A stretch of 12,075 bases of DNA, from positions 1 to 12,075 of the forward strand of contig BAAFSQ010000297.1 in the NCBI GenBank assembly GCA_054661495.1, in the 5' to 3' direction. Under the pieces are notes generated by a model. It saw only the letters and a program-made list of their open reading frames with translations, did no database searches and had not been told where the DNA came from. Both the position numbers and the translations under genes were made by a program. The stretch comes from Zygophlyctis sp. KS116 (Eukaryota > Fungi > Chytridiomycota). Positions 4,388 through 10,134 of the stretch are shown piece after piece; position 1 is the stretch's first letter, and every line of letters begins with the position of its first letter.

Positions 4388-6787
4388 TTATTCACTCTTA
4401 ATAATTCCAATGAAGGCTTCGGTGTTCTTGAGGTCCTTTTTACCTACTGAATGCTCCAATCCAGAAGAGACATCAATGCACCAAGGATTATATGCGAGTG
4501 CTTGGCTTATATTTGAGATTGATAATCCTCCTGCTAGAATAACCGGATAAATCTCCTTAATTTTGTTGAAAAGGTTCCAATCAAAAGATTTCCCAGATCC
4601 TCCCTGTTGTTTAGCACCTTTAATTCCAGTATCTAAGAGAATATATTTAGCAGATCCTTCATATGCCCTAATTCTAGATAAGATTTCCTCAATCGAGTCA
4701 CCTTCCATTACATGAATCACTTTAATAACGGGTGCAGAAATTAGCCGTACAAATTGAGGAACCTCGTCACCATGAAGTTGAACAAGATCCAATTTACATA
4801 GACTTACAGCCATATTGATTTCTTCCAGCGACTGGTTGGAAAAAACCCCAACTAATAGCGGTCCATTCTGCTCGAGGAAACTATCCATAATAGTACGAGA
4901 CTCGGAATAATTAGCACATATTGGAATACTTAAGATATTACGGGTTTCTGTCATCACACCGCGAGAAATTTGAATGGCCGTCTCTAACGATACTTTACGA
5001 GGGGAATTTGCAAAGATAATACCAATAAAGTCACAGCCAGCCCTAGCAGCAATGGTAGCATCTTCAATGTTGGTGATACCTACATATTTAGCAATGAAGA
5101 GGAATTACCGCAAACTTTGACCTTTTTCTTACTATTTCTTACCCTTGTTTCGACTTCTTTGCATAGTAATGACCGTATTAATTCCGGCTTATTTGAAGCT
5201 CGCATTAAAGCTTCTCCCACTAAAACTCCACGAGCACCACTAGATATATACGTTTCTACGTCTGATCTACTTGATATTCCACTTAACGCTATCAGAATAC
5301 AGTCGCTGGGAACTGACTTAGATAAGGATATGGTGCGGTTGTTATCTACTTTAAAAGTATGTAGGTCCCGATTATTCACTAAGTAATAAGTGAACATAAA
5401 TACTATATATACCTCCAATAATTTTCGATCCTGCCTTAATAGCCCTGTTCATTTCAAGTTCATTCGCGACCTCTACTAAAGGTTCCATTCCTAGCATACG
5501 CGAAATCTGAATCAGTTCTCGCAGCTCCTTATCAGACAAAATAGCAACAATCAAAAGAATTGAATCTGCCCCATAGCATCGAGCTTCAAAGACTTGATAT
5601 AAATCAACTATAAAATCTTTTCTTAAAATAGCTGGCCGACCAGGTTTATTGTCAAAAGCTCTCCGAACGTTCATCATGTCATTGATATGACCCTTAAACC
5701 ATTTTGGTTCCGTCAATACAGAAATAGCAGCAGCACCACTTTCCCAATACAACAAGGCCTGTGATGGAGCGTCAGCATTTATATCAATTTCACCTATTTA
5801 TTGGAACAAGATTCATATTTTACCTTTAGATGGCGATGCTCTCTTAATTTCAGCAATAACAGCAACTGGATTTGCACTATCAGCTAGCCTTTTCTGAAAA
5901 GCAATCACCGGTGGGGCTAAACCGAGAGCGATATGCCTTTCCAGGTGAGATAAGGATTTTCCAGGAATCATTTTCTCGTTGCTGACATCTTTAATCCTCT
6001 GAATCTTTATTTGCTCAAGAATGCTTGAAGACTTGTCAGAAATAGAGTTAATTGTTGAAACTTCACTTAGATCAATGCCTCCCCCGACAGTCTTCCTAGG
6101 GACTGTGACTGGAATCGGTTTCACCAAATCAAATCTGATCTTCAAATCCTGCCAAGTTCCACCCTCCCATTTCAGGAAATTTTTAAAAATCAAATAGCCA
6201 TTTTCGGAAGCAATGCTCTCCGGGTGGAACTGTACTCCTTCAATCACAAATTCTTTATGCCGTACTCCCATTATGATTCCACTATCAGTGGTGCTAGTCA
6301 CTTTTAATTCTGAAGGCAATGTGTTAAGATCTCCGGCAAGCGAATGATATCTGGTTACTTCAAAAAGTTGAGGGAGTCCTTCAAATACGCCTTTCCCATC
6401 GTGATTTATCCGAGAAGTCTTTCCATGGATTAACTCTCCCGCGTGACTGACTTTTCCTCCAAAAACCTCAAAAATAGCTTGCTCACCCTATAAATGAGTT
6501 GAAGGAATTAAAGTTACTAAGCATACTCCTAAAATTGGGATTTTTCCTGCAAAATAACGAATGATATCCGAAGATATTCCAGCTGTGGAAGGGTGTCCCG
6601 GTCCTACAGGTTAAATATATTTTTGAATACCAGGAGATATAACAATATTTCTAGGACAGAGCCCGATACATTCTTCTAGAGATATTTGATCATTTCTGAA
6701 AACGCGAACATCCGCTCCTAATTGGCAAAGATATTGGTAGACGTTCCAAGTAAAGCTATCATAGTTATCAATCAAAATTGTTATCAT
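4388..6787 (-). CDS. TRP1: Trifunctional tryptophan biosynthesis protein: anthranilate synthase component II (GATase, TrpG) + indole-3-glycerol-phosphate synthase (TrpC) + phosphoribosylanthranilate isomerase (TrpF), ~749 aa, 6 exons
   Basis: Predicted exons: 6787-6631, 6603-6518, 6487-5824, 5793-5413, 5378-5109, 5079-4388, totalling 2250 nt. The N-terminal part is missing from the ORF track and reads [20 protein letters not shown]...ISPGPGHP...GVCLGEQ...HGKTS...RYHSL...GVQFHPES, with the GATase Cys/His/Glu triad intact. IGPS motifs: [47 protein letters not shown] motifs: [39 protein letters not shown]. The domain order matches filamentous-fungal trpC/trp-1. Confidence 0.96.
6784..6787 (-). 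other. ATGA stop/start overlap between TRP2 and the TrpG-C-F gene
   Basis: The minus strand reads ...CCA ATA TGA TAA CAA... in the TRP2 frame (TGA 6786-6784) and ATG ATA ACA ATT TTG ATT GAT AAC TAT GAT AGC TTT in the -1 frame (ATG 6787-6785). Confidence 0.92.
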
Positions 6788-8321
6788 ATTGGAATATTTA
6801 AGTGTTTTGATGGGTTTGAAGAGATATTGTGATAAAATTTTTCGGCTTTTTCGATTGCCGTAACGTTTGATTTAAGCTTATTCAAAGTCTCTTGGAATTC
6901 ATCCTCTGGTATAGAATCATACACAATCCCTCCTCCAGCTTGTAAATAAACATGTTTATCCTTAAACAACATCGTTCTGATTGCAATACATGTATCTAAG
7001 TCACCATCAAAAGAAAAATAACCAACTGCTCCAGCATATATTCCTCGTTTTTCCTTTTCTAAAGAGTAAATGATTTCCATCGCACGAATCTTCGGTGCTC
7101 CCGATACGGTCCCGGCTGGAAAAACTGATCGAAAAGCATCAAAAGAAGTTTTTCCTTCGCGCAATTGGCCAGAAACATTAGAAACAAGATGCATTACATG
7201 TGAATATCGTTCAATGTGCATCAAAGAATCAACTTTAACCGTGTTGGGATCACATATGCGATTGACGTCATTTCTTCCCAAATCGACCAGCATAATGTGC
7301 TCAGAGCGTTCTTTTAGATCAGCTAAAAGATTTTGAGCCAGTTCATCATCTTCCGCTAAAGTTGATCCACGCTTTCTAGTGCCTGCTATGGGATGAGTGT
7401 ATACGGTATTCTTGGAAACTTTGACCAACATCTCGGGAGACGCTCCAACCAACTGAAATTCATTGTTCAGGTTAATATAAAACATATAGGGACTTGGATT
7501 GACTCTTCGCAACATTCTATAAGCATTGAATGGATGTAGATCAGTCTTTTTCTTGATTCTTTGAGAAGGTACCGCCTGGATTATATCTCCCTCTACAATG
7601 AAATCCTTAAGATCTTTCACAAAATTCTGATATCCTTCTTTTCCAACATTAGAAATAGCTTCATGACCGAGCGTTATTGGACCTTGATCGGGCAGTGTTA
7701 ATTCGTCGCTCTCCAATTTTCCCAGGCATTTTTGAATTTTTTTAGTGGCTTTATCATATGAGATTTGTAAAGATTCATCAGGAGTAGTGAATACATGAGA
7801 AATTATACGCAAAGTCTGAAACAAATGATCAAAAACAACAACAGTATCACAAAACATAAGCACAGCATCTGGTAACCCCAAGGAATCCTTCAGCTCAGGA
7901 ATATTTCTTTTGATTGAAGGCTCGAATACTCTAACACAATCATATGAAATATATCCAATCGCACCACCAGTAAAGCTGGGAATTTCAGGAACTCCAATAT
8001 AGTTAATTTTTTCCATTTCTTGTTCGATTATAGTTAATGGATCACCCTGGTCTGCATTACATGAAACAACTTTATAAGGACATGTACCAATAAAGGAGAA
8101 TCGCCCAAGTTTTTCACCCCCAAGGACAGACTCAAAAAGAAACGAGTAACTTTCTCCATTCGATAATTTCAAATAAGCAGATATAGGAGTCAAAAGGTCT
8201 GCAGAAAGCTCGGAATATACCGGAATCACGGAAGGCTTCTGATTATTTCCAAGAATGGACTTAAATTCTTCAAAACTGGGTCGTACCTTGGGTTAGAAAT
8301 TCAAAAAATTACCGGGTTCAT
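6784..8321 (-). CDS. TRP2: Anthranilate synthase component I (TrpE), ~503 aa, 2 exons
   Basis: Predicted exons: 8321-8313 (ATG AAC CCG) and 8286-6784, separated by a 26-nt intron (GTAATT...CTAACCCAAG). This gives the N-terminus [12 protein letters not shown]. Motifs: [122 protein letters not shown]. Confidence 0.96.
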
Positions 8322-9000
8322 ATTTAGTTTCAATTAATTTTGGCAAAACAACTGTTAAAGGTTCAAAAAGAAAATTCCTTTTCATCTTTGATAAACAGCG
8401 AAGAAGCTGTTTCTGAGAGACATTTAAATCCGACCTTATAGACGGCTTTAATGAATTTATAAGCGCTTTAACACGCTCCCTTCGATCCCTATAAAATTGA
8501 ACCATCAAAGGGTATTTCAAGAATTTACGATTCTGAGAGAATTTTCTTTCCAAAAACCCAGTATTAGAATTCGAAGATTGCTTGACACGGGAAAACGATT
8601 TCGGTTTCAACAAACTCCCATGAATTTTGGGAAATACGACATCTACAGATTTTCCACCTTCTTTCAAATCGGTAGAAAATGAATTCCAAATAGATTGTGG
8701 CTGAATTGGCTGTTTATAATTATCTAATGCAGGCCAATCATCCCGTCTTAACAATTTACAAGATATCTTTGGTTTACGATAGCGTTTAAGTGCTCTATGT
8801 CTTTTTTTTCCACGGTCCTCTACGTCCTAAAATTATAAAATTGCAGATACCGAAACGGAGGACACAATTTCCTTATTACGAGCGATCGTCTGAACAAACG
8901 ATCGTGAAGAAGGAAAGGGACTATTATGGGGCTCACCAGCAACACGATTGCTACTAGAAGCCCAACCAACTCTGAATATTATTGCACTCCTTATCTTTAT
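8293..9000 (-). CDS. Hypothetical Lys/Arg/Ser-rich protein (ORF X), ~225 aa, start unresolved
   Basis: The frame is open from 9006 to 8851 and from 8826 to 8293. The two parts are joined in frame by a 24-nt intron of the same type as the others (8850-8827, GTATCT...TATAATTTTAG), which itself contains stops. There is no in-frame ATG until 8505. I do not recognise a family. It fills the whole gap between TSC10 and TRP2. Confidence 0.5.
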
Positions 9001-10134
9001 TTTTTTTCAAGCCTTCTGGTTAGGCCTTGCTCTACCATTGATTTGGAAAAATGCATTTCAACATCTCTATCAACCATAAAAGACCAAATACATAATGCCA
9101 AAGAGAGTAATGGCATAGCAAATGCTTCAGATACAGGATTTGGTCTTGGGCCACTGACATTTGCACAAACACGTATTAATTCCCCCAGTAAATCGTTTGT
9201 AATTACATATCTTGAATTAAATATTTCTACATTACCTTTCACACAAAATCCCACCAATCAATGCTAAAGCAGCATCTTTAGGCGATGATGTTGAGGCGTT
9301 CCCTTCAATATCTGCTGTTATCTTTGGTTTAATCTGATTTTCTTTTTCAAATCCTGGAGTGTCCATATTTGCTGGACAATATAAATGTACTTTTACGCCT
9401 AGAAACTTTAATTCTGACCTTAATGCATCAGAAAGTCCTTTTAAAGCATATTTAGAACCAGAATATGCAGAATAACCAATAAATGAAGTTAATGAGAGAA
9501 CAGATCCTACAAAAACTAACCTTTTTGGAAGTACTGACATTAAATCTTTCTTACTGACCGATCCCATGATTGCGGTATCCTTTGACTCCTTTCTATTTGA
9601 CTTTACTTTTGCCAACTTCATTAAAGCCGCAATAATGGCAGTACAAGTAAAATAATTTGCTGAAATCTGTTTTCTATAATCATCAAATGAATCTGCAGCC
9701 AATCCAGGCCTTGAACTTCCAGCGTTCGCAATAATCCAATCCGGCATAAATCCCAAATCATATAATTTAGAAAACGTTTCAAACATCCAATCTTCATTTG
9801 CAGAATCTCCTGCATAACTAACAACTTTTTGATCTGATTTAGCGCATGATTTTAATTCATCAACTGCAGAATCTAGAGCATCCTGTCCTCTTCCAATTAA
9901 AATAATATTAGCTCCTCTTTCCAATAACTCATGAGCTAGAGCCAAACCAAGTCCTTTTGATCCACCAACTATAAGTGCCACCTTTGGATACTTTTCTGAT
10001 TTTGAAATCCAAGATACAGAGATCAACCAGGAAATAACAACCTTTAAGATGGAAAATAAGAATATCAATAATAAACTCAATAGTACAATAATAATAACTT
10101 CTCCAGTGTAATCACGCAAGGCTGTAAAATTCAT
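8997..10134 (-). CDS. TSC10: 3-ketodihydrosphingosine (3-dehydrosphinganine) reductase, SDR family, ~370 aa, 2 exons
   Basis: Predicted exons: 10134-9236 and 9210-8997, separated by a 25-nt intron (GTAATG...TTTAATTCAAG). It has an N-terminal hydrophobic segment, GGSKGLG, ANAG, GYSAYSGSKYALKGLSDALRSE (YxxxK intact), the KDSR-typical PANMDTPGFEKENQIKP, and a C-terminal hydrophobic segment. The extreme 3' end could be spliced differently (see findings). Confidence 0.85.

Follow-up and report, generated by a model that had tools for sequence, protein, structure and literature searches.

Genes of the TrpG-C-F type in fungi include Aspergillus trpC, Neurospora trp-1 and Phycomyces trp1. Here, the arrangement of such a gene next to TRP2, which codes for anthranilate synthase component I (TrpE), was analyzed in the chytrid Zygophlyctis sp. 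KS116 on contig BAAFSQ010000297.1 of assembly GCA_054661495.1 (12,075 nucleotides (nt), one whole contig, hereafter the window). On the minus strand of the window, TRP2/TrpE of 503 amino acids (aa) is followed in the same orientation by TrpG-C-F of 749 aa, and the two coding regions overlap by 4 nt. The pair shares domains and G-C-F order with its named fungal counterparts, to which it is about 50-66% identical; however, it is adjacent stop to start, whereas the two genes lie 429 accessions apart in Cokeromyces and on different contigs in most Mucoromycota. The E-G-C-F fusions of Blastocladiomycota, Synchytrium and Thoreauomyces have the same four-domain order and orientation as the window pair, but their linker is about 115-130 nt longer and contains neither a stop nor a Met before TrpG, whereas that of the window is split by a stop and an ATG. 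Both proteins are typical of their fungal families, and the gene arrangement is conserved and real. We propose, with a probability of roughly 0.5, that the pair is the split product of an older E-G-C-F fusion, kept as a bicistronic unit in which TrpG-C-F is translated by reinitiation.

Comparable arrangements have been described outside the fungal nuclear genome. Bacterial trpE and trpG are translationally coupled (PMC6728339 on ATGA/TGATG overlaps), with the same subunits, order and 4-nt overlap as here, and on the preferred reading the window locus would function like such a pair; by contrast, the window proteins are fungal by descent, their genes carry spliceosomal introns and the arrangement probably goes back to a fused gene, not to operon transfer. 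Viral termination-reinitiation in fungi (AUGA in victoriviruses, UAAUG in CHV1; PMC2699510) resembles the window pair in the stop/start overlap after a long open reading frame (ORF) and in the use of fungal ribosomes, and reinitiation after long ORFs is mainly viral (PMC10275272). The window pair differs in that it consists of nuclear, spliced housekeeping genes, known here from sequence, for which no conserved upstream RNA structure was found and whose relatives have gaps of +10 to +18 nt. Polycistronic loci of green algae (PMC7896298; PMC11892635) likewise hold close, conserved, co-oriented eukaryotic ORFs, but the evidence for them comes from long reads and their translation relies largely on leaky scanning past short ORFs with few AUGs; this mechanism was rejected here, as the first ORF is 503 codons long and its region contains 38 AUGs. 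Finally, overlapping transcription in microsporidia (PMC2803860) likewise occurs in a compact genome with tiny intergenic spaces and transcripts that extend into neighbours, but there transcripts begin at starts of the individual genes and carry a very short 5' untranslated region (UTR), and this model predicts no tight junction in non-compact chytrids.

The exact ATGA of the junction is kept in L002, L003, L004 and L005, independent environmental assemblies with 96.7% and 72-73% nt identity to the window, and independently in Borealophlyctis. The contig L003 is RNA-derived, fully spliced and carries both ORFs. The features of the window are:

6784-8286, minus strand: TRP2/TrpE exon 2 up to the TGA, anthranilate synthase component I with PF04715 and PF00425
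8287-8312, minus strand: TRP2 intron of 26 nt, GT-AG, missing from RNA-derived L003 and present at the same site in L004 and L005
8313-8321, minus strand: TRP2/TrpE exon 1 with the ATG at 8321, within the 3'-terminal part of the upstream ORF, aligned with the spliced contig L003
6788-6847, minus strand: C-terminal tail of TrpE, the 60 nt 5' of the TrpG ATG, with 3% G, A/C-rich, without conserved structure
6784-6787, minus strand: ATGA stop/start overlap, TrpG frame -1 relative to TrpE, A at position -3 of the ATG
6631-6787, minus strand: TrpG-C-F exon 1, start of the glutamine amidotransferase (GATase) domain
6518-6603, minus strand: TrpG-C-F exon 2
5824-6487, minus strand: TrpG-C-F exon 3, end of TrpG and start of IGPS
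5413-5793, minus strand: TrpG-C-F exon 4, IGPS, followed by the 34-nt intron 5412-5379
5109-5378, minus strand: TrpG-C-F exon 5
4388-5079, minus strand: TrpG-C-F exon 6 up to the TAA at 4388, PRAI, with PF00697 on the L003 homologue
8270-9006, minus strand: conserved, unannotated ORF upstream of TRP2, which extends beyond the TRP2 ATG to a stop 26 nt (spliced) or 29 nt (unspliced) away

At the junction, the TrpG ATG (6787-6785) overlaps the TrpE TGA (6786-6784), and a second stop in the TrpE frame, TAA, follows at 6783-6781; the overlap, the double stop and the co-oriented order E to G-C-F of the original prediction were verified on the minus strand, and its product lengths of about 503 and 749 aa match the computed 503 and 749 codons. 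The first protein contains PF04715 and PF00425 and is nearest to fungal TRP2; the second unites GATase, IGPS and PRAI in one polypeptide, the Pfam domains being found on the L003 homologue. The TrpG-C-F gene is interrupted by five GT-AG introns (27-34 nt), its product is 74% identical over the full length to the intron-free protein of L003, and the 34-nt intron was spliced out in an RNA contig. The genome holds one IGPS locus and just one other chorismate-binding locus, on a separate contig. A bacterial origin, already denied by the original prediction, is rejected in view of the introns, the fungal best matches and the placement inside the chytrids: the best named TRP2 matches are chytrids (62-66%), and in a quick tree of a single protein, from which alone the organism was placed, the window and its environmental relatives form one long-branched group inside the chytrids without a resolved sister. 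The RNA runs containing the window sequence come from fresh water.

The analysis established gene structures, conserved adjacency and gap sizes and, at the DNA level, true fusions in two genomes. TRP2 and TrpG-C-F are adjacent in about 20 chytrid genomes; linkage was first indicated by contigs of equal length, and for twelve genera adjacency was judged from consecutive protein accessions (Fimicolochytrium, Polychytrium, Cladochytrium, Gonapodya, Gaertneriomyces, Chytridium, Polyrhizophydium, Quaeritorhiza, Batrachochytrium, Powellomyces, Clydaea and Lobulomyces). The distance from stop to ATG, read from DNA, is -4 nt in Borealophlyctis, +10 nt in L007, +11 nt in Phlyctochytrium arcticum and +18 nt in P. 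planicorne, and eight sequences have a tight junction with stop and start within -4 to +18 nt; wider gaps occur in Entophlyctis helioformis (+171 nt) and Hyaloraphidium (+236 nt). L007 (2891-6555) represents an environmental sister lineage with a 61% identical TrpG-C-F, in which eIF4G is still the convergent downstream neighbour. At the tight loci of the three cultured species (Borealophlyctis, P. arcticum and P. planicorne) the other annotated gaps measure 38-2030 nt, the co-oriented ones 107-495 nt. Moreover, in the five tight lineages the stop-to-ATG distance has a range of only 22 nt, as against 60 nt for the distance between TrpE core and TrpG. The ORFs are thus co-oriented with an unusually short, conserved gap, as in bicistronic loci, and the ATGA itself is not required for the arrangement as the gaps of +10, +11 and +18 nt show. 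Lack of conservation in relatives had been named beforehand as a sign of a chance product of genome compaction; adjacency and tight junction are, however, conserved over several chytrid orders. The junction stands out across chytrids, not inside the host genome.

The two genes are apparently unlinked in Geranomyces, Zopfochytrium, the Chytriomyces group and Cokeromyces. Unlinked chytrids carry an N-terminal extension on TrpG (P0132, P0135, P0138, P0151, P0167), which in Geranomyces resembles the Thoreauomyces linker; in many linked chytrids the TrpE tail is longer and includes an L-x-E-Q-like motif (C-termini of P0005-P0043). The transcript L033 has an A-rich leader and looks unlinked. A metagenome scan returned almost nothing beyond bacterial-level matches.

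True fusions were confirmed at the DNA level in Paraphysoderma (L009 4669-8301), where the frame stays open for 1210 codons, TrpE to TrpF, without a Met ahead of TrpG, and in Thoreauomyces (L113 3001-7035), with an uninterrupted E-G-C-F ORF of 1344 codons. Annotated E-G-C-F fusions with a long Met-free linker are present in several environmental contigs as well as in Allomyces, Sorochytrium, two Blastocladiella and two Synchytrium; TrpE-TrpG fusions occur in Creolimax and the amoebozoans Planoprotostelium and Balamuthia. Several public gene models are wrong in this respect: false introns laid over the stop fuse the pair in Borealophlyctis (L006 4771-4774) and P. planicorne (L031 about 6558-6582), and in Paraphysoderma the genuine fusion is broken up by another such intron. 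The models of Spizellomyces palustris, in which the DNYDS motif is missing, and Nowakowskiella JEL0407 (P0377, P0242) are probably false fusions as well. In four environmental proteins of about 2100 aa (P0286, P0288, P0293, P0297) TrpE, G, D, C, F and B stand in one chain. On the simplest reading, the fusion would be older, chytrids would have split it within the linker, and Thoreauomyces would represent a later re-fusion; the TrpE tail at 6788-6847 is probably a remnant of the fusion linker. The original prediction of an operon-like pair therefore stands as regards the tandem stop/start arrangement, but not as regards a bacterial-style operon, because the E-G-C-F fusions in related fungi indicate gene fission.

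Following this, we infer that the fusion is ancestral, that both frames are served by one mRNA and that translation restarts by reinitiation. The ancestral TrpE-linker-TrpG-TrpC-TrpF gene, still present in other zoosporic fungi, would have acquired a stop and a new ATG in its linker. The downstream half of a gene split in this way needs either a promoter of its own or translation from the old mRNA, and the two frames may have stayed stop to start by being read from one mRNA. After termination of TrpE the small subunit would remain on the unstructured, G-poor junction and restart at an AUG located -4 to +18 nt from the stop; complete TrpE would then be released as the N-terminal TrpG domain begins to emerge, which would be the same order as in the assembly of yeast anthranilate synthase. 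In yeast, co-translational engagement is limited to nascent Trp3, whereas the Trp2 interface forms only once the protein is complete (PMC10963368), and TRP2 and TRP3 mRNAs co-localise (bioRxiv 10.1101/2025.02.19.639054). The narrow range within which the stop is held to the ATG in five lineages, despite the variable distance from the TrpE core, argues for reinitiation, and overlap or spacing of stop and start within a few tens of nt is what termination-reinitiation requires. Furthermore, the last 60 nt before the TrpG ATG contain 3-10% G in the four ATGA lineages as compared to a median of 20% in other coding tails, none of which (0/105 predicted) has 5% G or less. Synonymous conservation in the last 80 TrpE codons (0.37-0.49) was only mildly higher than elsewhere (0.20-0.42) and is not usable.

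The original prediction had also considered that the junction conceals a single E-G-C-F product of about 1250 aa, and this alternative is not borne out in any of its forms. A fusing intron was rejected: the nearest AG dinucleotides flanking the TrpG ATG end at 6846 upstream and at 6756 within the conserved DNYDS motif, and since no AG lies between these positions a cis intron cannot join the genes, as had been predicted from the missing acceptor; moreover, contigs of two RNA runs cross the junction ungapped, one of them identical to the window over 6691-6889. The same ungapped contigs, from two other runs, and the identical ATGA of four independent assemblies leave a 1-nt assembly error that hides a fused gene next to no credibility, the existence of fusions in other species being all that speaks for it. 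A programmed -1 frameshift or readthrough yielding the fusion protein is only a little less implausible. The TrpG frame is indeed open for 28 codons upstream of its ATG in the window, as first noted, and for 20 codons in L003, where it comes with an in-register slippery heptamer A-AAU-UUU; furthermore, the P. planicorne junction is in frame and true fusions exist. However, in the window the heptamer falls out of register and L005 lacks it, so that L003 is the only case of it in register with an open frame, and the frame closes after 9 (L004), 12 (L005) and 7 codons (Borealophlyctis). The E-to-G phase differs among species (-1, +1 or 0), no stimulatory downstream structure was found at the junctions folded, and the TrpG Met and its Kozak context are kept in every case. 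The pair does not form one open frame, its stop and -1 frame change being conserved and present in RNA contigs.

How far the tight junction is exceptional within the host was assessed with an ab initio gene finder on 200 kb plus the window of the 12.7 Mb assembly (1175 contigs), the counts being approximate: the finder recovered TrpG-C-F but took a 25-nt intron 4 where RNA has 34 nt, and it merged TSC10, the upstream ORF and TRP2. Genes spanned about 84% of the sequence, and introns were mostly 24-31 nt long with a peak at 25-28 nt. Co-oriented pairs predicted outside the window had gaps of at most +1 nt in 7/77 cases and within +20 nt in 9/77, with tandem gaps clustering at -1, 0, +1 and +1 besides the -4 of the TRP pair (L011-L030, G000 contigs 1-15); the median tandem gap over all 80 predicted pairs was 134 nt. 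Convergent gaps were 50 nt or less in 15 of 23 predicted pairs, and four divergent pairs were spaced by only 30-37 nt.

These figures bear on the most serious rival explanation, namely that the junction is a fission scar expressed from two overlapping monocistronic mRNAs, the 3' end of TRP2 holding the promoter and a short 5' UTR of TrpG-C-F, and TrpG in turn the end of the TRP2 mRNA; the tight junction would then be kept by signals in coding DNA and, in the host genome, by general compaction. A separate TrpG-C-F transcript with its start inside TRP2 was already among the alternatives of the original prediction, and we consider this explanation a substantial possibility, although the less probable one. 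Several observations favour it or weigh against reinitiation in a bicistron. Near-zero gaps between unrelated co-oriented genes are not rare in the host genome, and because such tight junctions are common there the ATGA overlap alone proves little; the closely spaced divergent pairs indicate that a promoter may take up very little space or sit within coding sequence, convergent genes are crowded as well, the unrelated upstream ORF overlaps TRP2 as well, and microsporidia express genes in this way. At all eight tight junctions a purine at -3 and an AUG-free stretch of 54-118 nt precede the ATG, as in a scanned 5' UTR, which the G-poor tail could also be. Folding of the eight junctions gave z-scores of -1.8 to +1.2 and no shared structure (pseudoknots being outside the model), and neither a TURBS-like motif nor UGGGA was found near the junction; the junctions thus did not show the conserved upstream RNA structure or rRNA-pairing motif of TURBS-type reinitiation. 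The two ORFs are joined only in assembled contigs, and L003, which also includes an unrelated upstream gene, is not proof of one molecule because assemblers join overlapping transcripts. UPF1 is present in the genome, and a bicistronic mRNA, with five introns 3' of the TrpE stop, would have to escape decay. The wider gaps and the unlinked state of several chytrids indicate that coupling is dispensable, and the single-gene tree does not settle the order of fusion and split events. In addition, reinitiation in a fungal virus reaches an efficiency of 2.5-4.4% (PMC2699510); while a coupled unit as originally predicted is conceivable, delivery of matched subunit amounts would demand reinitiation far above this level. 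On the other hand, overlapping mRNAs leave unexplained why the gap measures -4 to +18 nt in three cultured chytrids that belong to different orders and in which most neighbouring gaps run to hundreds of nt. Searches of the junction for promoter-like motifs, Gcn4 sites and AATAAA-like signals yielded no conserved element, and the G-poor tail is unlike the upstream regions of other host genes (1/105). Improbable, in our view, is a single mRNA in which TrpG starts through internal ribosome entry or mRNA processing independent of TrpE termination, or the coexistence of both transcript types: an unstructured A/C-rich segment does precede the ATG and green algae have partly polycistronic loci (PMC7896298), but internal entry or processing gives no reason for a stop within 20 nt of the ATG and no conserved element was found for it.

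The pair closes a row of six co-oriented genes on the minus strand (11753-4388), consisting of SDR, eIF1A, TSC10-like, an ORF without assigned function, TRP2 and TrpG-C-F, with gaps of 67, 18, about 0 or overlapping, -26 and -4 nt in this order; eIF4G is convergent, 22 nt from the TrpF stop. The upstream ORF between TSC10-like and TRP2 overlaps TRP2 in relatives too and has counterparts in L003 (1-653) and L005 (about 1250-2000). It gave no Pfam match, and neither in the window nor in L005 does its conserved 5' end contain an in-frame ATG; a non-AUG start or a hidden first exon is possible. Two RNA contigs end at exactly 8990, within this ORF. An A-run at the TSC10 stop, seen in the window only, is placed such that a -1 shift would join the TSC10 and upstream-ORF frames.

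No description of the TRP2/TrpG-C-F linkage in chytrids or of the E-G-C-F fusion was found in a literature search that covered few subscription journals. If the pair is indeed a split fusion kept as a reinitiating bicistron, the joining of two enzyme subunits by cellular reinitiation would show that fungal ribosomes do so for housekeeping genes, and the junction would provide a short natural element for two-gene expression; cultured species with a tight junction are available in Borealophlyctis, Phlyctochytrium arcticum and P. planicorne. The living series from fused through stop-to-start and spaced to unlinked genes makes it testable how a eukaryotic gene splits before its downstream half gains a promoter. 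Even if the mRNAs overlap instead, the series is a useful character and exposes wrong public gene models. With slightly less than an even chance, two subunits of the enzyme are coupled in chytrids through efficient reinitiation past a 500-codon first ORF; their bicistron, nuclear and spliced, would be old and a long-lived stage between the fused and the unlinked state, and such coupling may extend to dozens of pairs in this compact lineage. Genome-wide coupling or extreme compaction may underlie the close gene spacing of the host genome.

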